A stretch of 64,000 bases of DNA from Isurus oxyrinchus (lineage: Eukaryota), in NCBI GenBank assembly GCA_026770705.1, contig JANJGN010000323.1, positions 1-64,000 on the forward strand, read 5' to 3'. Made by a program: the position numbers and the translations under genes. The notes under the pieces were generated by a model. That model worked only from the letters and a program-made list of their open reading frames with translations, was not told the DNA's origin and did no database searches. This document shows, in pieces, positions 26,356-64,000 of this stretch; position 1 is the stretch's first letter, and each line of letters begins with the position of its first letter.

Positions 26356-26495
26356 TCAAACAGTCTGTCGACTTGCTTTCACTGTTTGTCTCTCCCAGAC
26401 ACAGACTCCAGCGATAGTGATAACCACAGCCACAAGGAATATCACAGCTCGTATTCCCAGGATCAGGATCACGTGCAGAATCTCTCCTCCACTGT
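26356..26495 (-). CDS. Gene A transmembrane/short-tail exon: (H)SGGEILHVILILGIRAVIFLVAVVITIAGVCVWERQTVKASRQTV*
   Basis: Acceptor tttctttctgtgtgttctctag|, phase 1 matching the upstream Ig exons. Long hydrophobic segment with an embedded Arg, 12-aa tail without Tyr, TGA at 26356-26358. Confidence 0.85.
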
Positions 26496-28173
26496 CTAGA
26501 GAACACACAGAAAGAAATCATCACTGACTCTCCGCTTTCAATCTCTCACTCTGGCTGAACAATCAAGCTTCATATCACTGCAACATTTGCTGTAATATTG
26601 ACCCATCCACTGGGATTCAATGTGGAATGAATGTTTTCATTGTAAACACTCTAAGAGTGGACAATCGGAACTTTCCCCTTAGCGTGGAACATTGGTGAGA
26701 ATGGATCATTGTGCTGTTGGACTCCCTGTCCAATGTTTCTCCCAATCGTTGTGTACAGGATTGTGCTGTAGAAAATTCTGGAAACGTTTAGTGCAGGGTG
26801 GAAATCCATCTCGGACGCGTGTACGAATCGGGCAGGATCGAGATGGACTCCCCCACGGACTTACAGGCCTCACTTAATAAACAGTTCCAATCTTTACCCA
26901 GAGAGAGGGGAGAATGTGGAACTCGCTCCCACAGGGAGTGGTTGAGGTGAACAGTATCAATGTACTTAAGGGGCAGGAGGCTCGGTAACCAGAGGGACAC
27001 AGATTGACGAACCGAAGGGGGAGATGAGGAGAATTTGTTTTGACAGAGCGAGTTGTTGTGATCTGGAAGGTGCTGCCTGAAAGGGCGGTGGAAGCAGATT
27101 CAATAGGAACTTTCAAAAGGGAAATTGGATAAATACTTAAAGGAGGAAGATGGTGGCAAATTGGAATGGTGGTTAGTGGATCTGATTGGATAGAACATTG
27201 AAAGACCTGGCACAGGCACAATGGACTGAATGGCCTCCTCCTGTGCTGTATCATTCTCCGTTTCCATGATCTCTCCCCCAGTCAGTAATGACTCCAGATC
27301 CCTCTTGAAGGCGACAGAGAATCAGCAACCACCACACCCACTGACAGCACATTCCCGAGGATCACTACTCTTTGGGAAAAGATGAACTCCCCAACATCCA
27401 GCCTATTCCTGCTTCCCAGAGAGTGTCAACCCTTCAGGGAGGCACTGAGGAAGTTTTCAATAAAATGACATCAAATCTACCGTTTGAGAAATAATTGAAT
27501 TCCAATGAACTCACAGCTTGTGGAGCAAACTGGGAAGTGGAGTTGCTTGAAAAGCTGGGAAACACAAGGATTAAGTGCTACAATGCCACCACTGGTAGGA
27601 GACTGTAACTACAGCGTGATGTTTACATAGGCAATTCCCATTATGAACAAGGACATTGGACATCATGTGAAATATGGGCACTGGAAAGGTGAGAACATGA
27701 TGTAAGCTTTTCACCAACAGGAATTCTCCTCCTAAACCTCTCCACCTCTCGCTTACTCTCAAATACACAAAGAAAATCACACAAATCAGATAAGGAGGAT
27801 TTGGGACCGGTGATTGTTCGAAGGGTGAGCTTTCAGGAAGCTTCTTAAAGGGAGAGAGAGAGTTGGAGAGGCAGAGAGTATCTGTGAGTGTCTCTATGCA
27901 TCTGACTGTCTGTAATAGACTTTGTAATTTCCATATTCTTGCATAAATATGAATGGGAACACAAATCCCAGAATTCAGGCCAACTCTCCAGGGCAGTACT
28001 GAGGGAGGTCAGGTAGCCCACAGGGGAGTGTGTGTTAGTGTGTTTGTGTGTGAGTGTGTCTTTCTGTGTGGTCATATATGTGTGTCTGCATGTGTCTACT
28101 TAGATGTGTATGTTTGAGGGTGTTTGTGTCGTGTTCGAATCTGCGAGAGATGTTGAAGTCTGTGTACACTCAC

Positions 28174-28326
28174 GTTCCACAGTGATGGTTATGAATCCCT
28201 CCACTGCTCCATGTTCATTCTCTGCCACACACTGATAGTCTCCAGTGTCCCTGGATGTAATGTGAGGAATCACTAACCACAGCTCATTGTTGGAAGTTGT
28301 TCTGTTCATTGGGACATTAAGATGTC
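28174..28326 (-). pseudogene. Gene A second C2-set exon, 3' half only (...HLNVPMNRTTSNNELWLVIPHITSRDTGDYQCVAENEHGAVEGFITITVE)
   Basis: Near-identical to 39265-39417 with intact donor C|GTGAGT. The 5' ~120 nt, including the acceptor and first Cys, is replaced by unrelated sequence (28327-~28505). Confidence 0.88.
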
Positions 28327-28648
28327 AGGGCAGGAATCAAGAAGCCCGTTCACAGGATTACCAACAGAAAGTGAACAACAATTTATACTTAATGGGAAGA
28401 GAGTGCTGATTGGTTGGCAAGTGGTCTCTGATAGGTGGAGGTGTTGCCATGGAGAATGGTGTGTGCGAGATATAAAGTTTAGACAGCTTGTCTCTTCATT
28501 CAGCAATAATCAAATAAAGATCAATTAACTTCTATCGACTTTGAAGCACTTAGAGAGGCCTTAGAATGTGGATACTGAGAACGGGCTGCACTGTCAGAGG
28601 GTCAGCGCTGAGGGAGTGCTGATGTAGAATGAAAGTGTATGTAATTAC

Positions 28649-28945
28649 CTTGCACAGTTAGTACGAGGGTCCGCTCCGATGAAACAGATGGATATCTCAC
28701 TCTGCAGCTGAGAGTGTGTCCGTGGTGTTTGAGTGATGGAATCAGGGTCACAACACAAGTATAGGTCAGAGTGACACCATGCTGAGTTACAGTGTATGAG
28801 ACTGATCCAGGGACGTCAGTGGGAGTGTCCCAGGTTAAGACAGGTGCTGCTGTTCCATTGCATGTTGTGTTGAAGGTGCAGCTTACATCCATACGCTTTC
28901 CTGCAATAATTTCAGCAGGGAATATCGTGGGTTTATCTGTGAAAT
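28649..28945 (-). CDS. Gene A first C2-set exon (DFTDKPTIFPAEIIAGKRMDVSCTFNTTCNGTAAPVLTW...LSCRVRYPSVSSERTLVLTVQ)
   Basis: 297 nt, phase 1/1, open frame, acceptor ctgtctgttag|, donor G|GTAATT. Siglec domain-2 pattern with the BC-loop Cys. Confidence 0.85.
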
Positions 28946-29804
28946 CTAACAGACAGAGAATGGATCCTTTTAGAGAAATATAATGTGAAGCATCAGTTCA
29001 AATAGAAATCACAGTCCCACAAGAGAAAGCACTTTTACAAGGATGATATCAGAACTGAGAGGTTACAATGATCAGGAAAGATTTTCTTGCTCTTTGGCAG
29101 TAGTGTTTCTGTCTCTCAGCTTAATACACGTTCACTCCGAGACATGTGAATTGAGAACACTGGATGAGAGAAGAGGATCAGACCAGAGATTGGAGTTAAA
29201 AGCAGAATACTGCGGATGCTGGAAATCTGAAACCAAAACAAAAATTGCTGGAAAGACTCAGCAGGTCTGACAGTATCAGTGGAGAGGAAGACAGGGTTAA
29301 CGTTTCGAGTCCGTATGACTCTTCATCAGACCAGAGGTTTGAGTTCACTGGCTTCTCATTTCCTCAGTGATCTGGGTGATTTATCACCTTGTGGTTTGTT
29401 GGATCTTGCTGTGCACAAACTGCCTGCTGTGTTTAACATCTTTGACTACAATTCAGGCATAATTTCATTGGCTGTGAAGGGATTTGGATCCTCCTGAGGT
29501 GGTAAATTGCGCTGCAGAAATGCACATCTTTCTTTTATCGATACGTCAGACTTTTAAACAGGACAGGAGAGATTGATGGGAATGGATAACCTGATAATAC
29601 AGTTAATGCTTTTCATCATTGATATTAAAGTGAGTATTAGAGGTTGCTTTAGGACTGAACTGGAAGCGATCACCAGGTTATTGAGAATCAGACAGTGTGT
29701 TATAATAAGCTGTGTTTTGTGTTAATATGTAAACGTCACAGTAAGTGTTATTTCCCATTGAGTGTTGGATGTGAATTGTTGAGTAATTATAACGCAGCAC
29801 TTAC

Positions 29805-29836
29805 CAGAACCGTGAAGCCGGGTTACAGGGTAATAT
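29805..29836 (-). pseudogene. Gene A V-set exon remnant (last ~30 nt and donor only)
   Basis: Matches the 3' end of the V exons at 41326, 44867 and 58552, joined directly to upstream-intron sequence (aaatatcaatatttaactctggat). About 340 nt including the acceptor is missing. Confidence 0.85.
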
Positions 29837-30526
29837 AAATATCAATATTTAACTCTGGATGGTTTGTCAATCCACTAGACTCGATATCCACCCCCTCCAT
29901 CACTGGGGCACAGTGGCTGCTGTGTGGACCATCTACAGGACACACAAGGAACTCCCCAAGGTTTCACAATGGATGGAAGAGAATCCTGGACACAGGAGTG
30001 GACAAGTTCATTCTACATTGGCTCATGGTCCTCAGGACTCTGTTTACTGAAGCCAGTCTTCCACCCAACACAGTGTCTACAAGATACACAGGGAAACTGT
30101 GTAAACATCTCATCTCTCTACACCGACTGGTTTGGCTTCGGTTTAACTTTCAGTTATTTTACTACCTTATTGTGGTTGCTATGGTGAAACTGTGCAGGAT
30201 GTGTGAGGGCTGGACTCTCTGTCTATTCTGACTGCAGCTGTGATGTGGTCGTGGTGATTCTCAGTAAAATGAAACCCTCTGATCTCCTCCATCGCCGAGG
30301 TTTAGGGAGTGAATTCCAGAGCTCAGGCCCCAGGCAGCTGAAGGCACGGCCGCCACTATTGGAGTGATGGGAATCGGGGGATGGTCAAGAGGCCGGAATT
30401 GGAGTAACACAGAGATCTGGGAAGCTGTTTGGTTGAGTTGCAGGACGTTACAGAGATAAAGAGATAAGAATGATCTTTTACAAAAACTGTTAAACATAAA
30501 TCTGTCCATACTGACGATGATATTAC

Positions 30527-30566
30527 CTTGGAGAAGTGACAGGAGGAAGTAAGATTTCCCGATCAT
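30527..30566 (-). CDS. Leader exon copy A1, MIGKSYFLLSLLQ
   Basis: acaATG, 13 codons plus 1 nt, donor G|GTAAT, acceptor at 30606. One of five near-identical copies. Confidence 0.8.
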
Positions 30567-31016
30567 TGTCCACTCCCAGATAGTCCATCCACTTCTCACT
30601 CTCAAGCTGTGAAATAGAAAGGAGTTAATGAGACTTCACCTATTGTCCGACAGCTTTCAAGAGATCAGAACAGCTTTTAGACAATATCTTCACAGAAGAA
30701 TTTGATTCTCTGTGGGATGATAGGTGCTCTGCAGAGAGTTACAAGGCTTTAAGAAAGAAAATCAATGAAGGATTTGCATTTCTATAGCACCTTTCACCTC
30801 CTCAGGATGCCCCAAAGCTCATGTCTCTGCACTTCCCTCATCCCTTGAGCTAGAAAGATGTTCTGTACAACAGACCTGAGACTCACATCCAGATGTCAAT
30901 AACCAGTAGAAATCTTTCAAAGGCATCAATCATTGGAATCTGTCTTTATAAAGTCACAACATCAACAAAGGACGGTGTTGGTCGTGGAAGTGAATTCCAA
31001 TCGTTCCGTTACTTAC

Positions 31017-31101
31017 CCAGGACCTGTCCGACTGCTCGCCTGGGGAGGAACTGCCCACACGCTCTGCTTGGGCTGAATGACCTCTTCCTGTGCTGCCCCC
31101 T
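31017..31101 (-). other. 85-nt exon module upstream of leader (putative 5'UTR exon), copy A1
   Basis: Donor TGG|GTAAGT; lies ~410 nt upstream of the leader exon; PU.1/ETS-like AAAATGAGGAAGT at 31144. Confidence 0.65.
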
Positions 31102-31744
31102 CTGTGTATTTAGTGAGAAAGGGTTGATGTGTCTCTGTGAGACAAAATGAGGAAGTTGGATCAAAGTGACAGAGCAGCTCATGTTTTGAGATGTTGGTGA
31201 ACTTTGTGTCCTGACCCTGTGGTGATATTTCTGCTCACAGGTGGACAGTCATTGACCAGGAGTTTCTCCTGTGGGTCAGTGGGTTTCACAGCCAAATTCA
31301 GGGGGTCAGAATGTTGTGGGATTCAAGACCCGATTCAAGGGACGTCTGCCCCACAGAGTAGACTGAAACTCCCCAGTGTCAGTACTGAGCAAGTGCTGCA
31401 CTGTCGGATGGTCATTACTGAGCGAGTGTTGCACTATTGTAAGGTCAGTACTGAGGGAGATCTCCACTGTTTCAGGGTCAGTACTGAGGGAGTGCTGCAC
31501 TGTCAGAGGGACATTAATCAGGGAGTGCTGCAATGTTGGAGGATCAGTACTGAGGGAGTGCTGCACTGTTGGAGGGTCAGTATTAAGGTGCTGATTTACA
31601 AGACAGGACAATGGATTAGGAGCCGTCAGAACTCCCCCCATTATCACAGTCATGAATCACTAATTAGCCTAACATTCCTGTCTGCTCTTCAACACAGCTG
31701 ATTGGCTAATCTGATTCACTATCATTGGTGCACTTTGTATGTTC

Positions 31745-31865
31745 ATTGTCTAAGGAATCTCTTTGGATCCTCATTGTCTAAGGAATCTCTTTGGATCCTC
31801 ATGTCTAAGGAATCTTTTTGGATCCTCATTGTCCAAGGAATCTCTTTGGATCCTCATTGTCTAAG
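31745..31865. repeat. 28-bp tandem repeat ATTGTCTAAGGAATCTCTTTGGATCCTC (also 53450-53545, 60680-60765)
   Basis: 3-4 units per site; copy number differs between paralogous blocks. Confidence 0.9.
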
Positions 31866-32651
31866 GGATTATTTCTGATCCAAACCCCATATTGTTGTAT
31901 TGTTGATTCCGATGCAGCATTGTAGACTGACTTGTCCCCAAGCTCAGCACTGACCCTACTCCAGCAGACACTGTGAAACACACTAACAAAGCGCCTCTAG
32001 CCTGAGCTCTGCATGTGTCGAGAGAAAGACAAATATACAAACTGAATATTGACACCTTTACACACGGACAGCTTTACCTTCCTTCTCTCTTTCAGTTATC
32101 TTGCTCCCTTATTGAAGTATCTAGCAAGGTGAGAATGGACAGGAAGTGTGACACTGAACAGCCTGTCTATTCTAGGAGCTGCTGTGTTGTCTTCATGGGA
32201 AATTCTGACTAAAATCAGCAAAAGACACAAATTTCATTCCTTTGCTATCGGCGTCCAAGCATCAGGATAGACTTCATCCCCCAGTATTTATCACTGTTTC
32301 TCAACTCAACACCTCACACCCTCTGCCACTCGCTGACCTGCACTGGCTCCCAGTCCAGCAGAGCCTCGAGTTTAAGACGCTCATCCTCAATTTCCATTCC
32401 CTCCATTCCTCTTCTCCAATCACTTTCTCCTCCAACCATGCAAACCTCAAAGTCCTCTGCTCTCCTCCAATTCTGCTGTCAGACAGGGGGTCAGTGTATA
32501 TCAGTGAGCACAGGGGTGATGGGTGAATGGGACTTGGTGTGAGATTGTACACTGGCTCACTGCTGAATCTGTTCCCAATCACAGCTCAATAAGAATTATG
32601 TTTTACAAAGATGATTAGCCATAAATCTGTCCGAGCTGACAATGATATTAC

Positions 32652-32691
32652 CTTGGAGAAGTGACAGGAGGAAGTAAGATTTCCTGATCAT
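32652..32691 (-). CDS. Leader exon copy A2, MIRKSYFLLSLLQ
   Basis: Same structure as A1 with a phase-1 donor. Its 85-nt upstream exon is at 33135-33219 and its ETS site at 33262. Confidence 0.7.
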
Positions 32692-33974
32692 TGTCCACTC
32701 CCAGGTATTTCATTGGTTCTCAAGCTGTGAAAGAGAAATGAGTTAATGAGACCTCACCTCTTGCCTGACAGCTCTCGAGAGATCAGAACTGCTTTTAGAC
32801 AATGTCTTCGCAGACTAATTTCATTCTCTGTGGGATGATAGGTGCTCTGCAGAGAGTTACAAGGCTTTAAGACAGTAAAACAATGAAGGACTTGCATTTC
32901 TATATCGCCTTTCCCCTGCTCAGGACACCCCAAAGCTCTTGTCCCTGCTCTTCCCTCATCCCTTGAGCTAGAAAGATGTTCTGTACAACAGACTTGAGTC
33001 TCACACCCAGATCTCAATAACCAGTAGAAATCTTTCAAAGGCATCAATCATTGTAATCTGTCTTTATAAAGTCACAACGTCAACAAAGGACGGTGTTGGT
33101 GGTGGAAGTGAATTCCAATCGTTCCGTTACTTACCCAGGACCTGTCCGACTGCTCGCCTGGGGAGGAACTGCCCACACGCTCTGCTTGGGCTGAATGACC
33201 TCTTCCTGTGCTGCTCCCTCTGTGTGTTTAATTAGAAAGGGTTGATGTGTCACTGTGAGACAAAATGAGGAAGTGGTTAGTACCAAGTTAGGAAGCATCT
33301 CTTTGCCTCGCACAGTTAGAAAACTGTTAACCCTTTGCGTGCCAAGAATGTGGCTGAAGGGCCATCGACTGTTCACATGCAACAAGCTCGAGGGGGTTGA
33401 ACGGGCCTTCTCCTGTTCCTGTGTAAGAGGCTTGTGTGGCTGAATGGGCCTCCTCCTGTTCCTGTAAAACTGCCTCGAGGGACTGAATGAACCTCCTCCT
33501 CCGCTTCTTGTGTAACATGCTTGAGGGGCTGTTTGGGCCCCATCATGTTCTTATATAAGATGCTCGTGTGGCTGAATGAGACTTCTCCTGTTCCTATGTA
33601 ACTGACTTGAGGGGCTTAATGGACCTCCTCCTGTTCCTGTTCATCAAGCTCATGGGGCTGAAATGACGTCCTTACGTTCTGGTGTAAGAGGCTCGAAGGT
33701 CTGAATGGGCCTCCTCCTGTTGCTGTGTAACAGGCTCGAGGGGCTGAATGGGCCTCCTCCTGTTCCTGTGTAACAGGCTCGAGGGGCTGAATCGGCTTCC
33801 TCCTGTTCCTGTGTAACAGGCTTGAGGGGCTGAATGGCCTCCTCCTTTTCCTGTATAACAGGCTCATGGGGCTGAATGGCCTCCTCCTTTTCCTGTGTAA
33901 CAGGCTCGAGGGGGCTGAATGGCCTCCTCCTGTTCCTGTGTAACAGTGTCGAGGGGCTGAATGTCCTCCTCTCA

Positions 33975-34195
33975 TTAAAAATAAATACTGCAGATGTTAT
34001 AAATCTTCAATAAAAACAGAAAATGCTGCCTTACCTCAGCAGGTCTGGCAGCAGCTGTGGAGAGAGAAACAGAATTTTTGCTTATAGACTCTGAAGAAGG
34101 GTCATACGGACTCGAAATGTTAATTCCGTTTATCTCTCCACAGATGCTGCCAGACCTACTCAGTTTCTCCAGCATTTTCTGTTTTTATTTCAGGT
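33975..34195. mobile_element. Short interspersed repeat (AAATGCTGGAAAAACTCAGCAGGTCTG family), as inverted halves; also at ~8150, 17230, 24320, 29200, 55870, 57030
   Basis: Recurrent motif seen at least seven times in both orientations. Confidence 0.7.
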
Positions 34196-35308
34196 GCTCT
34201 CTTGTTCCTGTGTAGCAGGTTCGAGGGGGCTGAATGGCCTCCTCCTGTTCCTATTCAATGGGTAGTCAAAGTATGCGTCTGATTTGGGACCTCAAACCCA
34301 ATTCTGTCCTCAGGACATTGACAGATGGGGAGACCAGTTACAGGTTAAGGCCGGAGGATTATTTATTTTCCCAATCTTTTATCCAAGAATGTCATCAAAC
34401 ACAGAGCAGAACCAGGATCAAGGATGTTGGTCTCTGTGATCTGTAACACATCGCACAGTCCACCCATCCACTCAGCCTTCAGAATGGATGCTAATTGTAC
34501 TCTCCAAGTGTGAAAGACTAAAATGGTGGTTTATTGCAGCTCTATTTCATTCTGTTATCAAAGCTGTCTCATCCATCTATGACATATTGAAGAAGGTAAA
34601 CCTGCAACCAATTTTTCACATCATAATTTCCAATGTTCATTGGCAACATCAATGTAAACATGTCACGCTGAAATGATGTCCTCCCACCAGTAGTGGCACT
34701 GTAGCACATCTGTTATCCTCTGAGCTGCAGAGAATTTCTCAAATCTCCAAACAAATTGTTTCCATGTTTCTGGGATTGCTGTTAGTTTTGCTGTTTAACG
34801 ATGAAGTGTAAAATCCAAATATATATCTGAAAATACATTTGATTACAAAATGCTGAGTAAATTTTGCCAATCTCCTCTGCTCCAATTATCCACTGATCCT
34901 GCATTTCCTGAAGTCTACACTGGCTGATGAATATTCTGTAAACACTGACAGACAGGAAGGTGAATAACAGAATGAAAATTAACTCATAATCACGGACACG
35001 GGATTGAATTTGTCCGTTCTGTCCTGGTACATCATCGAATGATATCTAAAGACATTTACAATCAGAATGGAGAGAAGGATGTTTCCAACAGTGAGGGACA
35101 ATTCTGAAGGATGATGTTCAAATTGAAACCCACAGACAATCATCATGGATAGATCATTCCGAAGAAATTCCATCAGATTGTAACAAGAGGTTTAAATCTA
35201 TTTCCTGGGAGTGAGTTCCTGTGGATATTAGGAAGGTAATTTGGAGTTTTGAATGATTCTCCCGTTCTGTATTCTCCCCACACTGTGTGTGTCTCATTCT
35301 TGCTCAGT

Positions 35309-35425
35309 TTATAAATTCCCATAAACAGAATCCTTGGCAAAATCACAGTTTGCGTAAAGATCATCATCTGTATCAGGATTGACTCCGCGGATAGATTTCA
35401 TTTCCAGATCCTTCTCATCTTTCTT
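35309..35425 (-). CDS. Gene B terminal cytoplasmic exon KKDEKDLEMKSIRGVNPDTDDDLYANCDFAKDSVYGNL*
   Basis: Acceptor tttctattacag|, phase 0, two Tyr motifs (DLYANC; SVYGNL fits ITIM consensus S/I/V/L-x-Y-x-x-I/V/L), TAA at 35309-35311. Minus-strand AATAAA at 34530-34535 and 34362-34367. Confidence 0.85.
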   Translation of the reverse strand, partial: KKDEKDLEMKSIRGVNPDTDDDLYANCDFAKDSVYGNL

Positions 35426-35519
35426 CTGTAATAGAAACAGAAATGATCAGAGTGACAATCAGAGTGATCAGTGTTTAGTATTATTGATCCAAATCGAAAA
35501 TTCCACCCACAATAGATAC

Positions 35520-36260
35520 ATTAATTATTGATACTGAACAGGGTTTGATTATTGATTCTGAACAGGGTTTGATTATTGATTCTGAACGCGGTTTGAATAT
35601 TGATTCTGAACGCGGTTTGATTATTGATTCTGAATGGGGTTTGATTATTGATACTGAACCGGGTTTGTTTATTGATAATGAAGGGGGTTTGATTATTGAT
35701 ACTGAACGGGGTTTAATTATTGATTCTGAACAGGGTTTGATTATTGATACTGAAAGGGGTTTGATTATTGATTCTGAACGGGGTTTGATTATTGATACTG
35801 AATGGGGTTTGATTATTGATTCTGAATGGGGTTTGATTATTGATACTGAACGGGGTTTGATTATTGATACTGAATGGGGTTTGATTATTGATTCTGAACA
35901 GGGTTTGATTATTGATTCTGAATGGGGTTTGATTATTGATTCTGAATGGGGTTTGATTATTGATACTGAACGGGGTGTGAATACTGATTCTGAACGGGGT
36001 TTGATTATTGATACTGAATGGGGTTTGATTATTGATATTGAATGGGTTTTGATTATTGATTCTGAATGGGGTTTGATTATTGATTCTGAACGGGGTTTGA
36101 TTATTGATTCTGAACGGGGTTTGATTATTGATTCTGAATGGGGTTTGATTATTGATACTGAACGGGGTATGATTATTGATTATGAATGGGGTTTGATTAT
36201 TGATACTGAATGGGATTTGATTATTGATTCTGAACGGGGTTTGATTATTGATTCTGAACG
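35520..36260. repeat. 24-bp minisatellite GGGGTTTGATTATTGAT(T/A)CTGAA(C/T) in the last intron of gene B
   Basis: About 31 tandem units. Confidence 0.97.
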
Positions 36261-36394
36261 GTGTTGGGTGTGAGTTTGGTTGGGTTTGGGAGTGACTGTA
36301 TAAAAAATTGCAGATACAGGACTGGAGCAGCCATATCAATAACCAGGCTACTGGAGCAGCTGAGAGGCTGGGGATCCTGTGGTGTGTGACTCAC

Positions 36395-36499
36395 CTGATT
36401 CCTCAAAGCCCAACCACGCTCACAGTTTTCATAAACAGGACTTCGATGTTCATCAACACGATGGGTCGATTTGATTCCTGCTTTCCCCTTGCCTCTCTT
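36395..36499 (-). CDS. Gene B cytoplasmic exon KRGKGKAGIKSTHRVDEHRSPVYENCERGWALRNQ
   Basis: Acceptor ctctattacag|aaga, nearly identical to that of the terminal exon; YENC motif. The phase-0 donor CAG|GTGAGT lies within a CR1 fragment, so the 3' boundary is less certain. Confidence 0.65.
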
Positions 36500-37010: not shown

Positions 37011-37095
37011 CCAGGACCTGTCCGACTGCTCGCCTGGGGAGGAACTGCCCACACGCTCTGCTTGGGCTGAATGACCTCTTCCTGTGCTGATCCCT
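37011..37095 (-). CDS. Candidate gene B cytoplasmic exon (K)GISTGRGHSAQAERVGSSSPGEQSDRSW; sixth copy of the 85-nt module
   Basis: Acceptor aaatacacag|, donor TGG|GTAAGT. Phase 2->0 and open, which bridges the TM exon (ends phase 2) to the next exon (phase 0). Confidence 0.55.
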
Positions 37096-37903: not shown

Positions 37904-38000
37904 TTTCTCACACACTTGAAGATGAAGAATCCACTCAGTCCAACACTCAAACAGATTCCAGCTCCAAGCAATCCTGCTTTCCATTCATTGGAATCTCGCC
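37904..38000 (-). CDS. Gene B transmembrane exon (R)RDSNEWKAGLLGAGICLSVGLSGFFIFKCVR(K)
   Basis: Acceptor gattttacag| (phase 1), ~20-aa uncharged hydrophobic stretch followed by K-C-V-R-K, donor AA|GTAAGT (phase 2). Confidence 0.85.
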
Positions 38001-38189
38001 CTGTAAAATCAGCCAATGAATGACTCCGGTACAGTTTGAGAATGGTTCCCTATGTACATATAGTAATTCTGAACTTGTGAAGTGATATTGTCTATGCATG
38101 AAAGGTCTATACAAATAACATTTATCTATGTAATATTTATTGATAATATCCATGTACATGCAGGTTTCTATAAGGAGGATTCACATATA

Positions 38190-39264: not shown

Positions 39265-39546
39265 GTTCCACAGTGATGTTTATGAATCCCTCCACTGCTC
39301 CATGTTCATTCTCTGCCACACACTGATAGTCTCCAGTGTCCCTGGATGTAACGTGAGGAATCACCAACCACAGCTCATTGTTGGAACTTGTTCTGTTCAT
39401 TGGGACATTAAGATGTCGCCACGTCAGGTTAGAAGCTGGGAAGCTCTCGACAGAGCAGATTATCACTGCAGAATTCCCCTCAATTATATTGATCGATGAA
39501 GCGTTAATCATATCAAGAAAATTAATTGAGAGATTCTGTGGTGCAT
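39265..39546 (-). CDS. Gene B second C2/I-set Ig exon (DAPQNLSINF...IEGNSAVIICSVESFPASNLTW...RDTGDYQCVAENEHGAVEGFINITVE)
   Basis: 282 nt, phase 1/1, canonical C...W...DxGxYxC, acceptor tttgtttatag|, donor C|GTGAGT. Confidence 0.93.
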
Positions 39547-40290: not shown

Positions 40291-40587
40291 CTTGCACAGT
40301 TAGTACGAGGGTCCGCTCCGATGAAACAGATGGATATCTCACTCTGCAGCTGAGAGTGTGTCCGTGGTGTTTGAGTGATGGGATCAGGGTCAGAACAGAA
40401 GTATAGGTCAGAGTGACACCATGCTGAGTTACAGTGTTTGAGACTGATCCAGGTACGTCAGTGGGAGTGTCCCAGGTTAAGACAGGTGCTGCTGTTCCAT
40501 TGCACGTTGTGTTGAAGGTGCAGCTTACATCCACACGCTTTCCTGCAATAATTTCAGCAGGGAATATCGTGGGTTTATCTGTGAAAT
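40291..40587 (-). CDS. Gene B first C2-set Ig exon (DFTDKPTIFP...DVSCTFNTTCNGTAAPVLTW...LSCRVRYPSVSSERTLVLTVQ)
   Basis: 297 nt, phase 1/1, open frame, Siglec domain-2 signature including the BC-loop Cys. Confidence 0.93.
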
Positions 40588-41325: not shown

Positions 41326-41691
41326 CAGAAACATGAAGCTGGGTTACAGGGTAATAGTTATAGCTCGGAGCATTGTCAAATTCTATTCTGAAAAAATAAG
41401 GTCCTGCATCTTCCCGTCTGATGTTGTTTATAATCAGAGAACAGTCGCCATCTTTCAGGTCTCCAGACAGCCGGGTCCGATGGTGGAACTGTGGTAACTC
41501 GTGACTGTGATCCTTGGAGTGAAAGGCTATAGACAATGTTCTCCGTTCCTCATTATTAAACCAGACTCCAACTCGTGGTTGGTTTTCCAGACACGATGGA
41601 TAACTGTAATGACATGGAATCTGTACACAGGAATCTTCCTGCGCTGTCACCTCTCGTGGAGTGTCACCTTTCCACTCTTGTGACAGTCCAA
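41326..41691 (-). CDS. Gene B membrane-proximal Siglec V-set exon (Vb) with essential Arg (DAGPYFFRIE)
   Basis: 366 nt, phase 1/1; SCVQIPC, W, GDLKDGDCSL; no F-strand Cys; F-R-x-E motif typical of sialic-acid-binding V-sets. Confidence 0.93.
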
Positions 41692-44866: not shown

Positions 44867-45244
44867 CAGAAACGTGAAGCTGGGTTACAGGGGAAACGTT
44901 ATGGCTCGGACGATTGCCAAATTTTATCGTGAAAAAATAAGGTCCTGCATCTTCCCGTCTGATGTTGTTTATAATCAGGGAACAGTCGCCATCTTTCAGG
45001 TCTCCAGACAGCCGGGTCCGATGGCGGAACCGTGGTAACTCGTGACTGTGTCCCTTGGAGTGAAAGGCTATAGACCATTTAGACCATTTGTTCCGTATGT
45101 ACCTTCTCATTTTCCAGATTCCGACATGTGGTTTCTTTACCAAATCTGATGGATAACTGTAATGACATGGAATCTGTACACACAAACCTTCCTGCGCTGT
45201 CACCTCTCGTGGAGTATCACCTTTCCACTCTTGTGACAATCCAA
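44867..45244 (-). CDS. Gene B distal Siglec V-set exon (Va) lacking the essential Arg (DAGPYFFTIK)
   Basis: 378 nt, phase 1/1, intact splice sites and frame; Arg->Thr; basic C-C' loop KMRRYIRNKWSKWS. Confidence 0.88.
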
Positions 45245-51230: not shown

Positions 51231-52223
51231 AGAAACCGCTTGTTCCCTGCCCTTCTGAAAGATCCATTCCTGCAGCAGGAGCCTGAAGAGTTACTGATAA
51301 GAGATTTAATTTATCGGATTGTAGAATGATCCGGAACTGAAGGAAGCCATTTGGCCCATCGAGCCTGTGCTGGGCCTTTGAAAGATCTGTCCAATAAGTC
51401 CCACTCTAACCTCTGCTCTCTCCTCCACAGCCCTGCAAAATGTCCCCTTCAAGTATTTATCCAGTTCCCCTTCTGAAAGTTCCTGTTGAATCTGCTTCCA
51501 CCGCCCTTTCAGGCAGTGAGTCAATGGTCTCTCTCTGAGCTGCAAAGTGATAAGTTTCAATGAAATATAAACTCTGCAGCAGATCAGAAACAATCATGAT
51601 AACTCAGAATATTTGACAGTTTTACATACAGACAGCTTTGCCTCCCTTCTCTCTATCAGTTATCTTGCTATCTTATCGAATTTTCTAGCATGGTGAGAAG
51701 GGACAGGAAGTGTGACGCTGAACTGCCTGTCTAATCTAAGAGCTTCTGTGTTGTCTTCATGGGAAATTCTGATGAAAATCAGCAAGAGAGAAACATTTCA
51801 GGGCATTGATATCAGAGTGCTTGCATCAGGATAGACTTTATCCCCCAGTTTTTATCCCTGCTTCTCTATTCAGCCGATCGCTCCCCTGTCACTCGCTGAC
51901 CTGCACTGGCTCCCAGTCCAGCAATAACTCAATTTTCAAAATCTCTTCATTGATTCCTTATCCCTCCATCCTCCCTCTCCACTCCCTATCACTGTCACCT
52001 CCTCCAGCCCTGAAACCCTTTGAGGTCTCTGCTGTCCTGCAGTTCTGCTGTCAGACAGGGAGTCAGTGTATATCAGTGAGCACAGGGGTGATGGGTGAAT
52101 GGGACTTGGTGTGAGTTTGTACACTGGCTCACTGCTGAATCGGTTCCCTATCAGAGCTCAGTAAGAATGTTCTTTTACAAAGACTATTCACCATAAGTCT
52201 GTCCAAGCTGACGATGTTATTAC

Positions 52224-52263
52224 CTTGGAGAAGTGACAGGAGGAAGTAAGATTTCCCGACCAT
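52224..52263 (-). CDS. Leader exon copy B1, MVGKSYFLLSLLQ (nearest leader to gene B V exons)
   Basis: acaATG, phase-1 donor. 85-nt upstream exon at 52714-52798, ETS site at 52841. Confidence 0.82.
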
Positions 52264-54330
52264 TGTCCACTCCCAGATATTCCTTTAGCTTCTGACTCTT
52301 AAACTGTGAAAGAGAAAGGAGTTAATGAATCCTCACCTCCTGTCCGACAGCTCTCGAGAGATCAGAACTGCTTTTAGACAATGTCTTCAAAGACTAATTT
52401 GGTTCTCTGTGGGATGATAGGTGCTCTGCAGAGAGTTAAAAAGCTTTAAAAAAATAAATCAATGAAGGACTTGCATTTCTATAGCACCTTTCACCACCTC
52501 AGGATGTCCCAAAGCTCATGTCCCTGCTCTTCCCTCATCCTTTGAGCTAGAAAGATGTTCTGTACAACAGACCTGAGCCTCACACCCTGAACTCAATAAT
52601 CAATAGAAATCTTTCGAAGGCATCAATCATTGGAATCTGTCTTTATAAAGTCACATCATCAACAAAGGACGGTGTTGGTGGTGGAAGTGAATTCCAATCG
52701 TTCCGTTACTTACCCAGTACCTGTCCGACTGCTCGCCTGGGGAGGAACTGCCCACACGCTCTGCTTGAGCTGAATGACCTCTTCCTGTGCTGCTCCCTCT
52801 GTGTGTTTAATGAGAAAGGGTGGATGTGTCACTTTGAGACAAAATGAGGAAGTTGGATCAAAGTGACAGAGCAGCTCATGTTTTGAGATGTTGGTGAACT
52901 GTTAACCCTTTGTGTCCTGACCCTGTGGTGATATTTTTGCTCACAGGTGGACAGTCATTGACCAGGAATTTCTCCTGTGGGTCAGTGGGTTTCACAGCCA
53001 AATTCAGGGGGTCAGAACGTTGTGGGGTTCAAGACCCCATTCAGGGGACGTCTGCCCCACAGTGTAGACTGAAACTCCCCAGTGTCGGTACTGAGCAATT
53101 GCTGCACTGTCGGATGGTCATTACTGAGCGCGTGTTGCACTATTGTAAGGTCAGTACTGAGGGAGATCTCCACTGTTTGAGGGTCAGTACTGAGGGAGTG
53201 CTGCACTGTCAGAGGGACATTAATCAGGGAGTGCTGCAATGTTGGAGGATCAGTACTGAGGGAGTGCTGCACTGTTGGAGGGTCAGTATTAAGGTGCTGA
53301 TTTACAAGACAGGACAATGGATTAGGAGCCGTCACAACTCCCCCCATTATCACTGTCATGAATCACTAATTAGCCTAACATTCCTGTCTGCTCTTCAACA
53401 CGGCTGATTGGCTAATCTGATTCAATCTGATTGGTGCACTTTGTATGTTCATTGTCTAAGGAATCTCTTTGGATCCTCATTGTCTAAGGAATCTCTTTGA
53501 ATCCTCATTGTTTAAGGAATCTCTTTGGATCCTCATTGTCTAAGGGATTATTTCTGATCCAAACCCCATATTGTTGTATTGTTGATTCCGATGCAGCATT
53601 GTAGACTGACTTGTCCCCAAACTCAGCACTGACCCTACTCCAGCAGACACTGTGAAACACACTAACAAAGTGCCTCTAGCCTGAGCTCTGCATGTGTCGA
53701 GAGAAAGACAAATATGCAAACTGAATATTGACACCTTTACACACGGACAGCTTTACCTTCCTTCTCTCTTTCAGTTATCTTGCTCCCTTATTGAAGTATC
53801 TAGCAAGGTGAGAATGGACAGGAAGTGTGACACTGAACAGCCTGTCTATTCTAGGAGCTGCTGTGTTGTCTTCATGGGAAATTCTGACTAAAATCAGCAA
53901 AAGACACAAATTTCATTCCTTTGCTATCGGAGTCCAAGCATCAGGATAGACTTCATCCCCCAGTATTTATCACTGTTTCTCAACTCAACACCTCACACCC
54001 TCCGCCACTCGCTGACCTGCACTGGCTCCCAGTCCAGCAGAGCCTCGAGTTTAAGACTCTCATCCTCAATTTCCATTCCCTCCATTCCTCTTCTCCAATC
54101 ACTTTCTCCTCCAACCATGCAAACCTCAAAGTCCTCTGCTCTCCTCCAATTCTGCTGTCAGACAGGGAGTCAGTGTATATCAGTGAGCACAGGGGTGATG
54201 GGTGAATGGGACTTGGTGTGAGATTGTACACTGGCTCACTGCTGAATCTGTTCCCAATCACAGCTCAATAAGAATTATGTTTTACAAAGATGATTAGCCA
54301 TAAATCTGTCCGAGCTGACAATGATATTAC

Positions 54331-54370
54331 CTTGGAGAAGTGACAGGAGGAAGTAAGATTTCCTGATCAT
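54331..54370 (-). CDS. Leader exon copy B2, MIRKSYFLLSLLQ
   Basis: Duplicate of A2. 85-nt upstream exon at 54814-54898, ETS site at 54941. Confidence 0.7.
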
Positions 54371-55049
54371 TGTCCACTCCCAGGTATTTCATTGGTTCTC
54401 AAGCTGTGAAAGAGAAAGGAGTTAACGAGACCTCACCTCTTGTCCGACACCTCTCGAGAGATCAGAACTGCTTTTAGACAATGTCTTCACAGACTAATTT
54501 CATTCTCTGTGGGATGATAGTTGCTCTGCAGTGAGTTACAAGGCTTTAAGAAAGTAAAACAATGAAGGACTTGCATTTCTATATCGCCTTTCACCTGCTC
54601 AGGACACCCCAAAGCTCATGTCCCTGCTCTTCCCTCATCCCTTGAGCTAGAAAGATGTTCTGTACAACAGACTTGAGCCTCACACCCAGATCTCAATAAT
54701 CAGTAGAAATCTTTCAAAGGCATCAATCATTGGAATCTGTCTTTATAAAGTCACAACATCAACAAAGGACGGTGTTGGTGGTGGAAGTGAATTCCAATCG
54801 TTCCGTTACTTACCCAGGACCTGTCCGACTGCTCGCCTGGGGAGGAACTGCCCACACGCTCTGCTTGGGCTGAATGACCTCTTCCTGTGCTGCTCCCTCT
54901 GTGTGTTTAATTAGAAAGGGTTGATGTGTCACTGTGAGACAAAATGAGGAAGTGGTTAGTACCAAGTTAGAAAGCATCTCTTTGCCTCGCACAGTTAGAA
55001 AACTGTTAACCCTTTGCGTGCCAAGAATGTGGCTGAAGGGCCATCGACT

Positions 55050-55865
55050 GTTCACATGCTTTAAGCTCGAGGTGGTTGAACGGGCCTCCTCCTGTTCCTG
55101 TGTAACAGGCTTGAGGGGCTGAATGGACCTCCTCCTGTTCCTGTGTAACAGCCTCGAGGGACTGAATGAACCTCCTCCTCCGCTTCTTGTGTAAGAGGCT
55201 TGAGGGGCTGTTTGGGCCCCCTCATGTTCTTATATAAGATGCTCGTGTGGCTGAATGAGACTTCTCCTGTTCCTATGTAACTGACTTGAGGGGCTTAATG
55301 GACCTCCTCCTGTTCCTGTTCATCAAGCTCATGGGGCTGAAATGACCTCATTCCGTTCTGGTGTTAGAGGCTTGAAGGTCTGAATGGGCCTCCTCCTGTT
55401 GCTGTGTAACAGGCTCGAGGGGCTGAATGGGCCTCCTCCTGTTCCTGTGTAACAGGCTCGAGGGGCTGAGTGGGCCTCCTCCTGTTGCTGTGTAACAGGC
55501 TCGAGGGGCTGAATGGCCTCCTATTGTTCCTGTGTAACAGGCTCGAGGGGCTGAATGGGCCTCCTCCTGTTGCTGTGTAACAGGCTCGAGGGGCTGAATG
55601 GGCCTCCTCCTGTTGCTGTGTAACAGGCTCGAGGTGCTGAATGGGCTTCCTCCTGTTCCTGTGTAACAGGCTCGAGGGGCTGAATGGGCCTCCTCCTGTT
55701 GCTGTGTAACAGGCTCGAGGGGCTGAATGGGCCTCCTCCTGTTGCTGTGTAACAGGCTCGAGGTGCTGAATGGGCTTCCTCCTGTTCCTGTTTAACAGGC
55801 TTGAGGGGCTGAATGGCCTCCTCCTTTTCCTGTATAACAGTCTCATGGGGCTGAATGGCCTCCTC
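55050..55865. repeat. ~43-bp minisatellite GGCTCGAGGGGCTGAATGGGCCTCCTCCTGTTCCTGTGTAACA (also 33370-33970; inverted at 10490-10680)
   Basis: Tandem units resembling the CR1 3'-tail motif seen at 13340 and 42490. Confidence 0.92.
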
Positions 55866-56808
55866 TCATTAAAAATAAATACTGCAAATGTTGTAAATCT
55901 TCAATAAAAATGAAAAATGCTGCCTTAACTCAGCAGGTCTGGCAGCAGCTGTGGAGAGAGAAACAGAGTTTTTGCTTATAGACTCTGAAGAAGGGTCATA
56001 CGGACTCGAAATGTTAATTCTGTTTATCTCTCCTCAGATGCTGCCAGACCTACTCAGTTTCTCCAGCATTTTCTGTTTTTATTTCAGGTGCTCTCTTGTT
56101 CCTGTGTAGCAGGTTCGAGGGGGCTGAATGGCCTCCTCCTGTTCCTATTCAATGGGCAGTCAAAGTATGCATCTGATTTTGGACCTCAAACCCAATTCTG
56201 TCCTCAGGACATTGACAGAAGGAGAGACCAGTTACAGATCAATGCAGGAGGATTATTTATTTTCCCAATCTTTTATCCAAGAATGTCATCAAACATAGAG
56301 CAGAACCAGGATCAAGGATGTTGGTCTCTGTAATCTGTAACACATCGCACAGTCCACCCATCCACTCAGCCTTCAGGATGGATGCTCATTGTACTCTCAA
56401 AGTGTGAAAGACTAAAATGGTGGTTTATTGCAGCTATATCTCATTCTGTTATCAAAGATGTCTCATCCATCCATGACATATTGAAGAAGATAAACCTGCA
56501 ACCAATTTTTCACATCATAATTTCCTATGTTCATTGGCAACATCAATGTAAACATGTCACGCTGAAATGATGTCCTCCCACCAGTGGTGGCACTGTAGCA
56601 CATCTGTTATCCTCTGAGCTGCAGAGAATTTCTCAAATCTCCAAACAAATTGTTTCCCTGTTTCCCAGATTGCTGTTAGTTTTGCTGTTTAACGATGAAG
56701 TGTAAAATCCAAATATATATCTGAAAATACATTTGATTACAAAATGCTGAGTAAATTTTGCCAATCTCCTCTGCTCCAATTATCCACCGATCCTGCATTT
56801 CCTGAAGT

Positions 56809-56894
56809 CTACACTGGCTGATGAATATTCTGTAAACCTTCCTGAGCTGTCACCTCTCGTGGAGTGTCACCTTTCCACTCTTGTGAGGGTTCAG
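56809..56894 (-). CDS. Gene C fused terminal exon (A)EPSQEWKGDTPREVTAQEGLQNIHQPV*: start of a Vb exon joined to a 3'UTR copy
   Basis: Acceptor ctctccccag|. The first ~19 codons match V exons, then at ~56837 the sequence switches to the 3'UTR seen at 34940 and below. TAG at 56809-56811; AATAAA (minus) at 56424-56429. Confidence 0.7.
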
Positions 56895-58551: not shown

Positions 58552-58920
58552 CAGAAACGTGAAGCTGGGTTACAGGGTAATAGTTATAGCGCGGACCATT
58601 GTCAAATTCTATTCTGAAAAAATAAGGTCCTGCATCTTCCCGTCTGATGTTTTTTATAATCAGGGAACAGTCGTCATCTTTCAGGTCTCCAGACAGCCGG
58701 GTCCGATGGTGGAACCGTGGTAACTCGTGACTGTGATCCTTGGAGTGAAAGGCAATGGGAGCCCAGGGAATCTGTTTCTCATTATTAAACCAGACTCCAC
58801 CTCGTGGTTGGCTTTCCAAATGTGCTGGATAACTGTAATGACATGGAATCTGTACACACGAACCTTCCTGCGCTGTCACCTCTCGTGGAGTGTCACCTTT
58901 CCACTCTTGTGACAGTCCAA
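58552..58920 (-). CDS. Gene C Siglec V-set exon with essential Arg (DAGPYFFRIE)
   Basis: 369 nt, phase 1/1, intact frame and splice sites, same Siglec hallmarks as 41326-41691. Confidence 0.92.
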
Positions 58921-61900: not shown

Positions 61901-61953
61901 TCTTTTACAAAGACTATTAACCATAAATCTGTCTGAGCTGACAATGGTATTAC

Positions 61954-61993
61954 CTTGGAGAAGTGACAGGAGGAAGTAAGATTTCCCGATCAT
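61954..61993 (-). CDS. Leader exon copy C, MIGKSYFLLSLLQ
   Basis: acaATG, phase-1 donor G|GTAATA. 85-nt upstream exon at 62444-62528. Confidence 0.82.
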
Positions 61994-62570
61994 TGTCCAC
62001 TCCCAGATATTTCCTCAGCTTCTAACTCTGAAGTTCTGAAAGAGAAAGGAGTTAATGAGACCTCACCTCTTGTCCGAATGCTCTTGAGAGATCAGAACTG
62101 CTTTTAGACAATATCTTCACAGACAAATTTGATTCTCTGTGGGATGATAGGTGCTCTGCAGAGAGTTACAAGGCTTTAAGAAAGAAAAACACTGAAGGAC
62201 TTGCATTTCTATAGCACCTTTCACCACCTCAGGACACCCCAAAGCTCATGTCCCTGCTCTTCTCTCATCCCTTGAGCTAGAAAGATGTTCTGTACAACAG
62301 ACTTGAGCCTCACACCCAGATCTCAATAATCAGTAGAAATCTTTCAAAGGCATCAATCATTGGAATCTGTCTTTATAAAGTCACAACATCAACAAAGGAG
62401 GGTGTTGGTGGTGGAAGTGAATTCCAATCATTCCGTTACTTACCCAGGACCTGTCCGACTGCTCGCCTGGGGATGAACTGCCCACACGCTCTGCTTGGGC
62501 TGAATGACCTCTTCCTGTGCTGATCCATCTGTGTATTTAATTAGAAAGGATTGATGTGTCTCTGTGAGAC

Positions 62571-62583
62571 AAAATGAGGAAGT
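62571..62583. promoter_or_regulatory. PU.1/ETS-type site AAAATGAGGAAGT (also at 31144, 33262, 52841, 54941)
   Basis: Purine-rich GAGGAAGT core at the same position, ~43 nt upstream of each 85-nt exon that precedes a leader. Altered to AAATCAGGAATT in the intronic copy at ~37138. Confidence 0.55.
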
Positions 62584-64000
62584 TGGAACAAAGTGAGTGA
62601 ACAGCACTTTGCTGTGCACTGTCAGTAAACCCTGTGTCTGTATAAGAATATAAGAACAGAACAAGTAGGATCAGCTGGACACCCTGACATTTTCACTCCT
62701 TATATTCCATCCACTCATTTTTTTATCCACTCACTGAAACTATTTATCTCCCTCTGCAGCCTCTTTGTGTCCTCCTCACAACTTGCTTTCCTGCCCAGCT
62801 TATATATTTCCTACCTATCTTCACCATATAGTCAGAAAATCTGCCGACAGTACAGTCAGTCCCTTCATCCAAGTCACTAATGTAGATTGTGAATAGTTGA
62901 GGCCTCAGCACTGATCCCTGTGGCTCTCCACTAGTTACAGTTTACCAAGCTGAAAATCACCCATTTATCCTGGCTCTCTGTTTCCTGTCAGTTAGCCAGT
63001 CCTCTATCCATATTAATATATCCCCCCCAACACCATCCAATTTCACCCTGTGCAGTATCCTTTGATGTGGCTCCTTATCGAATGCCTTTTGGAAATCCAA
63101 TGTCACGAAGAGATATTTGTGTGTAAAATGTGCTTGGAAATTATTAATAAAATAGAATTCTAGTGGTGGTCCATGTATAGGTGTGTGTCTGGGTGTGTCT
63201 TAATTGGATTAAAGCCAACTGGTCTGTGTGTTTTGATGTTTAATAGTTTTGAGATGTTAATTGGGTGAATTGTGAGGAGAACAGTAAATTGTTCATTTGC
63301 AATTGTTGAATAAACCATTCCAGACTGGGGGTAAAATCTTGCACCTAGTTAGAAGGAGCCAAAAGATGTGTTTTTTCTTGAACTTACTAATGAAATTGGT
63401 GCTATGAAAGGGGGTTTTATTGTTCGAAGAGGTGGAGTTCAGAAGACCGAGTGATACAATGGAAAATTTACATTCAAAGGGAAAGCTAGCTATATAAAGG
63501 AAGGAGTTTGTGTGTGTGAGGCAGGAGCATTTCAGACCTAACCAGCCTGTAGCCTCCAACCAACTTGCAAAGGAACCTCATTCGGAATTCGTAATGTCAA
63601 ATGTGCTTTGCCTGGTGTTTATATTATGTGAATGGTTCATTGTTGCCTTAGTAGAGATTTACGTGGGGGTGATTAATTGGGGGATTTGTTAAAAAGTTAT
63701 TATAGTAGTTATTTGTAGCCAATGTGTATGTGTTAAATTAATAAATGGTTTATTTAATTTTATATAAAAAACCCTCAATCCTCGGTCGTCTTATTCCTAC
63801 TGAATTCAAAGTCTTCATCTCGAAATTACAAACAGCAAAATTGCGTTACGACAGTTGTTTCAATTTTCCCTCTGGGATTTGAACAACTCAGCCTTTACCC
63901 TTGGCTGTGTCATAGTCCCTAATACACCACATCTACAGGTTCCCCTTTATCCAATCCACTTGTTACATCCTCGAGGAAATCTAATTATTTTTTCAAACAT

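Follow-up and report, generated by a model that had tools for sequence, protein, structure and literature searches.

Whether a cartilaginous fish carries, side by side, an inhibitory Siglec-type receptor, an activating partner built on the same ligand-binding domain, and a soluble decoy is the question raised by a stretch of 64,000 nt from Isurus oxyrinchus (contig JANJGN010000323.1; the whole of this stretch is called the window). An initial annotation of this DNA had proposed such a trio in the form of three tandem paralogues, here termed genes A, B, and C, the Siglec exons of which all lie on the - strand. We consider it probable that the window instead belongs to an extensive Siglec-like cluster that has grown by tandem expansion in a lamniform-type shark, and that within it one intact gene (B) lies between two damaged paralogues (A and C). 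Exons were located by tblastn with long open reading frames (ORFs) and by direct reading of letters and splice sites, and were searched singly, not as a joined spliced model, by Pfam, against solved structures, and against protein collections.

By their layout of V-set followed by C2-set domains, their F-strand arginine, and their Siglec cysteine pattern, the genes of the window are Siglec-like. The three complete V exons (V58 in gene C, V45 and V41 in gene B) matched Pfam V-set (about 1e-11) and Ig_CD22, C2-1 matched C2-set_2, and C2-2 matched Ig_3 and I-set, which bears out the presence of Siglec-like exons on the - strand. The best solved structures for V41 were those of Siglec-5 (4e-14), Siglec-8 (1e-12), and CD33 (3e-12), followed by Siglec-10, MAG, sialoadhesin, and Siglec-7, with MAG and sialoadhesin scoring almost as well as the CD33-type structures; the matches to Siglec-15 and CD22 structures were far weaker (E of 6e-4 for the CD22 V domain). 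The motifs CVQIPC, DCSL, and YFFRIE of V41 aligned with CVLVPC, NCSL, and YFFRVE of Siglec-5, and because of this alignment to Siglec-5 residues the Siglec cysteines and the sialic-acid arginine are regarded as present in V41 and V58. The YFFRIE arginine was kept in both of these exons, and V45 reads YFFTIK, with a threonine in place of the sialic-acid arginine. Through its F-strand arginine, V41 of gene B would be predicted to bind sialylated ligands. C2-1, which contains three cysteines, aligned to domain 2 of the MAG and CD33 structures. Compared with great white and basking shark proteins, the exons of the window showed 93-97% identity, in keeping with the cartilaginous fish that had been proposed as their source.

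Gene B spans 54.9-35.3 kb and is structurally intact, the sole intact one of the three genes. It contains two V exons, two C2 exons, an uncharged transmembrane (TM) exon (WKAGLLGAGICLSVGLSGFFIFKCVRK), and three tail exons, the last of which encodes DLYANCDFAKDSVYGNL-stop, and its tail motifs YENC, YANC, and SVYGNL were read in the exons as initially described. The proposed transcript would run through two units of 85-nt exon and leader, V45, V41, C2-1, C2-2, the TM exon, a further 85-nt exon, and the two exons that carry YENC and YANC...SVYGNL. The phases are all compatible: the V and C2 exons run from phase 1 to phase 1, the 97-nt TM exon from 1 to 2, and the 85-nt exon from 2 to 0, followed by a YENC exon of 105 nt and a last exon of 38 codons plus stop. 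The great white protein P0259, automatically named "MAG-like X4", carries the same chain of TM, 85-nt, YENC, and last exons at 97, 77, 86, and 92% identity, respectively. The N-terminus of P0259 matches a + strand V exon (8.8-9.1 kb) and its C-terminal half matches gene B on the - strand; thus, the P0259 model cannot be collinear with gene B.

Gene A is proposed to be of the activating type, with a leader, V, C2-1, a TM exon with a buried arginine, and a 12-residue tail. The arginine exon was read as SGGEILHVILILGIRAVIFLVAVVITIAGVCVW ERQTVKASRQTV-stop, as the initial annotation had it, and encodes the helix ILILGIRAVIF... (ILILGIRAVIFLVAVVITIAGVCVW) and the tail ERQTVKASRQTV, which is devoid of tyrosine; the cassette combines a basic residue in the membrane helix with a short motif-free tail. 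This exon was 93% identical to great white P0223/P0224 and 78% identical to Scyliorhinus torazame P0006, and the helix was identical to that of P0260. The exons of gene A were 92-93% identical to great white "CD33-like" P0260, great white "Siglec-12" P0223/P0224, and S. canicula "Siglec-14 X2" P0261, in each of which one or two V domains are followed by C2-1 and the arginine exon, namely the layout expected of gene A. Unlike gene A, these proteins have their V exon. In this assembly, a deletion of approximately 335 bp has taken the V acceptor and nearly the whole exon of gene A, leaving the last ~31 nt and the donor. At the junction, the intron "...aaatattgatattt" (longer, "...ccagagttaaatattgatattt") abuts "atattaccctgtaacccggcttcacggttctg/gtaag", and the BLAST homology of the remnant to the V41 and V58 exons stops at 29835. 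A longer remnant reaching 29886, suggested by tblastn, was rejected because the additional stretch is translated intron.

The C2-1 exons of genes A and B were 97.6% identical as DNA, with seven of 297 nt differing (four amino-acid changes and three silent). One of the changes in gene A destroys an N-x-T sequon and another gains a cysteine, and the gene B exon agrees with its orthologues. Only the 3' half of C2-2 is left in gene A. This half exon is skipped by the RNA joint 28649>26495 and C2-2 is absent from P0260, P0223/4, and P0261; since the arginine-anchored shark models lack C2-2, the half exon is an old relic and not a fresh lesion. The open frame that remains in gene A comprises the leader, C2-1, and the membrane exon, without a lectin domain. 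With its V exon lost, gene A is neither a lectin nor a working activating partner of gene B, and this copy is probably a pseudogene that would be unable to bind ligand. Its arginine-anchored relatives would signal through an acidic adaptor chain bearing an ITAM (immunoreceptor tyrosine-based activation motif).

Gene C begins with a leader (MIGKSYFLLSLLQ) and V58, which was 93.5% identical to the V domain of the great white arginine-anchored model P0223. It contains no C2 exon. Its second V exon opens with an intact acceptor at 56894 (tctctccccag/CTGAACCC...) as an internal-type V exon, AEPSQEWKGDTPREVTAQEG, and breaks off after 20 codons. The sequence from 56836 downward matches that from 34943 downward, which lies ~366 nt past the stop of gene B; the frame ends eight codons past the junction at TAG 56811-56809, and AATAAA signals at 56429, 56261, and 56083 match those after gene B. 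Gene C would once have been longer, and one internal deletion would have brought the 3' untranslated region (UTR) of the same gene up against codon 20 of the second V exon; such a single deletion explains the shape of the gene. The predicted product consists of the leader, V58, and 28 residues without a membrane anchor, and the reading frame does stop after one V domain as first noted. This product may be secreted, or the gene may simply be dead. As regards the decoy role assigned to it, what was observed is a frame open through the leader, V58, and 28 residues, with polyadenylation signals retained, and the gene looks like a deletion product. A search with the V58 frame and its intron read-through returned nine annotated shark and ray proteins, none from the window and none transcript-derived, and a search with P0005 for the window's own annotated products flagged none.

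The three genes had been described as sharing near-identical leader, V, and C2 exons. This description does not hold, as gene A retains ~31 nt of V and half of C2-2 and gene C has no C2. Near identity is found in the leaders and in the C2-1 exons of genes A and B, but not in the V exons, which were 72-86% identical as protein and two of which most likely lie in gene B. In total, the cluster contained five leader exons, three complete V exons, two V remnants, two C2-1 exons, one complete and one half C2-2 exon, and two mutually unrelated membrane exons. The leaders read M(I/V)(G/R)KSYFLLSLLQ, end in CAAG/GT in phase 1, and have their ATGs at 61993, 54370, 52263, 32691, and 30566. Self-BLAST revealed that a 4.5-kb block at 56837-52162 recurs at 34943-30464 with 90-97% identity, and the first copy probably forms the 5' end of gene B. 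The 85-nt exon occurs in six copies that are 96-98% identical, have AG...GT borders, and are each open in the coding frame of gene B; one is the cytoplasmic coding exon of gene B and the other five are located ~450-530 nt upstream of a leader.

Sequencing runs were compared with positions 26300-32299, the gene A stretch. X1 and X2 (one organism) and X5 (a second organism) were RNA-like, and X19 was DNA-like, without splice joints. X1, X2, and X5 all showed a GT..AG joint from the C2-1 donor to the acceptor of the arginine exon (28649>26495), and X19 did not; because this joint occurs in RNA-like runs only, the arginine exon is used in mature RNA after a C2-1 exon. A second joint, from the V donor to the C2-1 acceptor (29805>28945), was found in X2 and X5. 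Its contigs carry B letters at all sites that separate A from B, so this splicing belongs to gene B or a B-like gene and not to gene A. The letters private to gene A (C at 28751 and 28756, T at 28892) were found in none of the RNA contigs, all of which were B-type (5/5 letters in record 20 and 2/2 in record 30); the RNA contigs give no sign that this gene A copy is expressed. An intact, expressed allele of gene A, considered from the 29805>28945 joints and an X19 loose end at 29837, was rejected because the contigs are B-type at these three positions and the introns preceding V exons differ so little (~95% alike) between paralogues. The spliced transcripts that were anticipated for the cluster are seen for the passage from C2-1 to the arginine exon, but the contigs lack the private letters of gene A. 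Other loose ends join the leader donor to a V-exon start (source copy ambiguous), the leader donor to the 85-nt exon of the next unit (X1 and X2), and the donor of the 85-nt exon to a near-identical YENC-type exon start. For gene B, the RNA-like runs X1-X3 contained 33-39% of the sampled words of 35300-41700.

The wider family was collected by searching V41 against 1.84 billion representative proteins at E<=1e-10, which yielded 249 proteins, many with two to four V domains. The best matches were automatic shark and ray predictions named Siglec-5/6/8/10/12/13/14, CD33-like, MAG-like, or CD22-like, and Siglec or CD33-like automatic names were given to proteins of at least 20 species of sharks and rays. 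Automatic annotation thus already shows the main phenomenon. Three types of ending were recognized in the shark family. Ending I has an uncharged helix and a long tail finishing LLYANINF...TEYAQIRF; it occurs in paralogues of other sharks and not in the window, and its tail resembles that of CD33-type Siglecs, with an immunoreceptor tyrosine-based inhibitory motif (ITIM) and an ITIM-like motif. Ending II, that of gene B, has the helix GLLGAGICLSVGLSGFFIF and the tail D-x-Y-x-N-C, seven residues, and [SA][VI]Y-x-N-[LIV] at the C-terminus; this module was kept in 26 relatives with a spacing fixed at 6-7 residues. Ending III, that of gene A, reads ILILGIRAVIF... and stops ~12 residues past the helix, and this arginine membrane cassette has been kept in three orders of sharks.

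Arginine-anchored and tyrosine-tailed proteins of the same species had closely similar outer domains (last V plus C2-1, ~225 residues), with identities of 94% in great white (P0224 vs. P0179), 89% in Chiloscyllium punctatum (P0021 vs. P0187), 87% in S. canicula (P0261 vs. P0227), and 84% in S. torazame (P0006 vs. P0154), whereas the arginine-anchored proteins of different species shared only 51-84%. A tree of 41 outer domains grouped the proteins by lineage. The tail type changed 12 times on this tree (minimum 2), none of 200 shuffles gave a number as low as 12, and the arginine-anchored proteins required at least 3-4 changes. This pattern would be expected of paired receptors, in which outer domains are exchanged or re-duplicated, or signalling cassettes are shuffled. 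The paired-receptor reading thus holds for the shark family and only partly for the window: other sharks have 84-94% shared outer domains with interleaved tails, but the window, in which gene A is without a V exon, does not contain paired neighbouring genes with near-identical ligand-binding domains.

The tail of gene B contains three tyrosines, all in YxN, and only S-V-Y-G-N-L matches the ITIM consensus; the combination of an ITIM and a membrane-distal ITIM-like motif, of the immunoreceptor tyrosine-based switch motif (ITSM) type, known from CD33-related Siglecs was not found in this tail, which has YENC, YANC, and SVYGNL only. When phosphorylated, the three tyrosines would recruit SH2 proteins; SVYGNL fits an ITIM (SHP-1/2) and the YxN sites fit Grb2, as in CD22, with a net effect that is likely dampening or modulatory. 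An inhibitory gene B, as initially proposed, is plausible in that SVYGNL fits an ITIM, but the tail differs from that of CD33-type Siglecs, in which an ITIM is joined by an ITSM, and we infer this role with reserve because only the last of the three YxN tyrosines fits the consensus. That the C-terminal Y-x-N-C, seven residues, and Y-x-N-[LIV] would give an activating or dual signal is unlikely. The last two tyrosines are 11 residues apart, which equals the spacing of an ITAM, and the YxN sites are of the Grb2 type; the module is kept in 26 relatives and recurs in CD22-like proteins of ray, sawfish, and turtle as well as in one protein of a goby, and position -2 of the only ITIM-fitting motif is A or P in some relatives. 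On the other hand, the first motif has C at +3 in gene B, and C, W, or F among its relatives, where an ITAM needs L or I, the ITIM consensus is matched by S-V-Y-G-N-L at the end of the tail, and in CD22 the YENV/Grb2 site takes part in inhibitory signalling.

Ending II-like tails (...Y-x-N-x, 6-7 residues, [VI]Y-x-N-[VILM], at the C-terminus or close to it) were found outside the window in P0026, P0036, P0016, P0081, and P0122. Their bearers include rays, a sawfish and a turtle with proteins named "CD22-like", and a goby. The ending II tail module may be older than sharks.

A working trio, consisting of an inhibitory gene B, an activating gene A that shares its ligand-binding domain, and gene C as a secreted decoy, appears improbable in this window. 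The membrane and tail exons are as described, C2-1 is spliced to the arginine exon in RNA-like runs, gene C keeps its open frame, arginine, and polyadenylation signals, and such pairs are present in other sharks. However, gene A has no usable V exon, its private letters are missing from the RNA contigs, one deletion accounts for the shape of gene C, and the tail of gene B is not a canonical ITIM plus ITSM tail. It is also conceivable, albeit with no great probability, that both lesions are biology, with gene C an expressed secreted single V-domain decoy made by one deletion that spared its 3'UTR, gene A a null allele that is intact in other individuals, and the ending of gene B a signalling module of a third kind among Siglecs, besides the ITIM/ITSM tails and the arginine-anchored forms. 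If so, sharks would independently show the loss of the activating partner and the formation of a decoy that are known from primate Siglec pairs.

The lesions of genes A and C could conversely stem from collapse or mis-joining during assembly of a repetitive cluster in which the real genes are intact, an explanation that we regard as quite improbable. The 4.5-kb blocks are 90-97% identical, and X19 contigs pass from the intron just upstream of the A remnant to an intact V-exon start, ...ctctccctag/GTGGACTGTCACAAGAATGG, which matches no V exon in the window. Nevertheless, both junctions are clean and have no N gaps near them (the N runs of the window lie at 1.3 and 2.3 kb, distant from the Siglec genes), block copy 1 sits in unique flanks, and the private substitutions of C2-1 in gene A fit a decaying copy. 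The X19 contigs may be derived from a paralogue, as the introns upstream of V exons are ~95% alike between paralogues. That V58 is an upstream alternative V exon of gene B, which would be a three-V receptor with the intervening leaders as alternative first exons, is very improbable. Three-V proteins with a B-type tail do exist (e.g., basking shark P0163), and leader-to-next-unit splicing and read-through models occur in the cluster, but the intact acceptor at 56894, a stop, and three AATAAA signals intervene and two full leader units precede V45.

Several points weigh against the reading of the window as one intact gene between two damaged paralogues. The 23-28 letters on the C2-1 side of the arginine joint fit gene A, gene B, or a paralogue elsewhere. 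The V-exon start in X19 may come from an allele without the deletion, from an orthologue, or from a close paralogue, and the deletion in gene A could be haplotype-specific or an assembly fault. V45 and V41 most likely both belong to gene B, an assignment drawn only from multi-V relatives, and the full transcripts of genes B and C are predicted on the strength of homology and of contigs that cross-map to gene A. The single ITIM-consensus motif of gene B, together with a Y-to-Y spacing equal to that of an ITAM, would allow more than one direction of signalling.

Human SIGLEC14-null and SIGLEC16P are cases in which the activating member of a pair has been lost by a small lesion and its tyrosine-tailed neighbour is intact. 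Genes A and B are similar, with the activating-type copy disabled and the tyrosine-tailed neighbour intact. The shark family resembles the human pairs Siglec-5/14 and Siglec-11/16 in having neighbouring genes with near-identical outer domains, one with a tyrosine-motif tail and the other with a basic membrane residue and a very short tail. The origins are independent, because the primate pairs are recent. In contrast to the human pairs, the shark arginine cassette is one conserved exon across orders, there are three ending types, often with several V domains in a row, and the arginine copy of the window is without V. CD33, Siglec-5, -7, -8, and -10 provide the best structure matches for the V exon, and share with it the cysteines, YFFR, and the layout of V plus C2, but gene B differs from CD33-related Siglecs in its tail of three YxN sites. 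CD22, which carries a YENV Grb2 site, is similar in that the V exons match Ig_CD22 and YENC, YANC, and YGNL recall YENV; the turtle and sawfish "CD22-like" proteins also have ...VYxN[VL] ends similar to that of gene B. The solved CD22 V domain gave a much weaker match than the CD33-type Siglecs, and CD22 has seven Ig domains (vs. four in gene B) and several canonical ITIMs, which gene B lacks.

Fish genomes have been described as containing only Siglec-1, CD22, MAG, and Siglec-15, with inhibitory Siglecs of the CD33-related group missing (PMC7226832), and the literature searched yielded no paper that deals with Siglecs of sharks. Within species, the outer domains of Siglec-5/14 are kept alike (PMC4042635). 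A 2014 paper found no FcR-gamma in shark data (PMC4016189). In the shark family, the V domains of which are CD33-like, outer domains that are almost alike carry tyrosine-motif tails or a conserved arginine cassette, and this would place brake/accelerator pairs of the Siglec type in cartilaginous fish, with an origin independent of the recent pairs in primates. Sharks thereby provide another, old lineage for asking how such pairs come about and why it is so often the activating partner that is lost, and the window supplies two examples of turnover, namely an activating copy that has lost its V exon and a V-only gene produced by deletion. The coordinates of the features are listed in Table 1.

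Table 1. Positions of Siglec-like exons and duplicated blocks in the 64,000-nt window.
Feature	Coordinates	Strand	Remarks
85-nt exon unit 1, 5'UTR-type copy	62444..62528	-	Upstream of gene C leader; AG...GT; 98% identical to gene B copy
Gene C leader, coding part	61954..61993	-	Phase 1 donor
V58, V-set exon of gene C	58552..58920	-	V-set 3e-11, Ig_CD22 4e-9; YFFRIE intact; splice sites read
Second V exon of gene C, truncated	56809..56894	-	20 V codons (V remnant 56894-56837); junction 56837/56836 to 3'UTR-like sequence; stop 56811-56809
Block duplicate, copy 1	52162..56837	-	3'UTR-like sequence, tandem repeat, two units of 85-nt exon and leader
Copy-1 units	85-nt exons 54898-54814, 52798-52714; leaders 54370-54331, 52263-52224	-
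V45, outer V of gene B	44867..45244	-	Pfam V-set 9e-12; splice sites read; arginine replaced, YFFTIKF
V41, inner V of gene B	41326..41691	-	YFFRIE intact; splice sites read
C2-1 of gene B	40291..40587	-	C2-set_2 5e-8; 96% identical to basking and great white models
C2-2 of gene B	39265..39546	-	Ig_3 2e-12, I-set 3e-10; 94-96% identical to great white and basking models
Uncharged TM exon of gene B	37904..38000	-	Matches great white P0259 residues 420-451 at 97% identity
85-nt cytoplasmic exon of gene B	37011..37095	-	Phase 2 in, phase 0 out; equivalent after TM exon in P0259, P0194, P0014
PVYENC cytoplasmic exon of gene B	36395..36499	-	Matches P0259 residues 480-514 at 86% identity
Last coding exon of gene B	35309..35425	-	92% identical to P0259 residues 514-552; motif kept in 26 relatives
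Block duplicate, copy 2	30464..34943	-	Gene B 3' flank, tandem repeat, two units of 85-nt exon and leader
Copy-2 units	85-nt exons 33219-33135, 31101-31017; leaders 32691-32652, 30566-30527	-	Second leader is that of gene A
V-exon remnant of gene A	29805..29835	-	Last ~31 nt and donor; acceptor and ~335 nt deleted
C2-1 of gene A	28649..28945	-	Pfam C2-set_2; borders match RNA joints at 28945 and 28649
C2-2 of gene A, 3' half	28172..28324	-	tblastn covers only residues 64-123 of gene B exon; 5' half missing
Arginine TM exon and 12-residue tail of gene A	26356..26495	-	Letters read
85-nt exon, all copies	62528-62444, 54898-54814, 52798-52714, 37095-37011, 33219-33135, 31101-31017	-

The basking shark models P0194 and P0233 run through the 85-nt/leader units out of frame. 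Between the last leader unit of gene B and V45, ~7 kb (45300-52100) holds + strand ORFs and is probably a long first intron with inserted repeats; Pfam searches of the + strand ORFs at 47.6-50.9 kb returned no match, and no transposon was assigned there. A reverse-transcriptase fragment is present on the - strand at 44212-44646, in the intron between V45 and V41 (Pfam RVT_1, 3e-8). A tandem-repeat array with a 24-nt periodicity is located at 35521-36265 within the last intron of gene B, related arrays were found at 39676-40171 (the C2-1/C2-2 intron), 24414-24933, and 2639-3005, and arrays are also located within both block copies (33349-33971 and 55065-55865). A 2.6-kb array at 5095-7693 has a strong GC skew (0.77). 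On the + strand, a leader-like exon (7962-8018) and a V-set exon (8821-9114) were 89-92% identical to the N-terminus of great white P0259, and this V-set exon reads VYYFYVD where YFFR would be expected.

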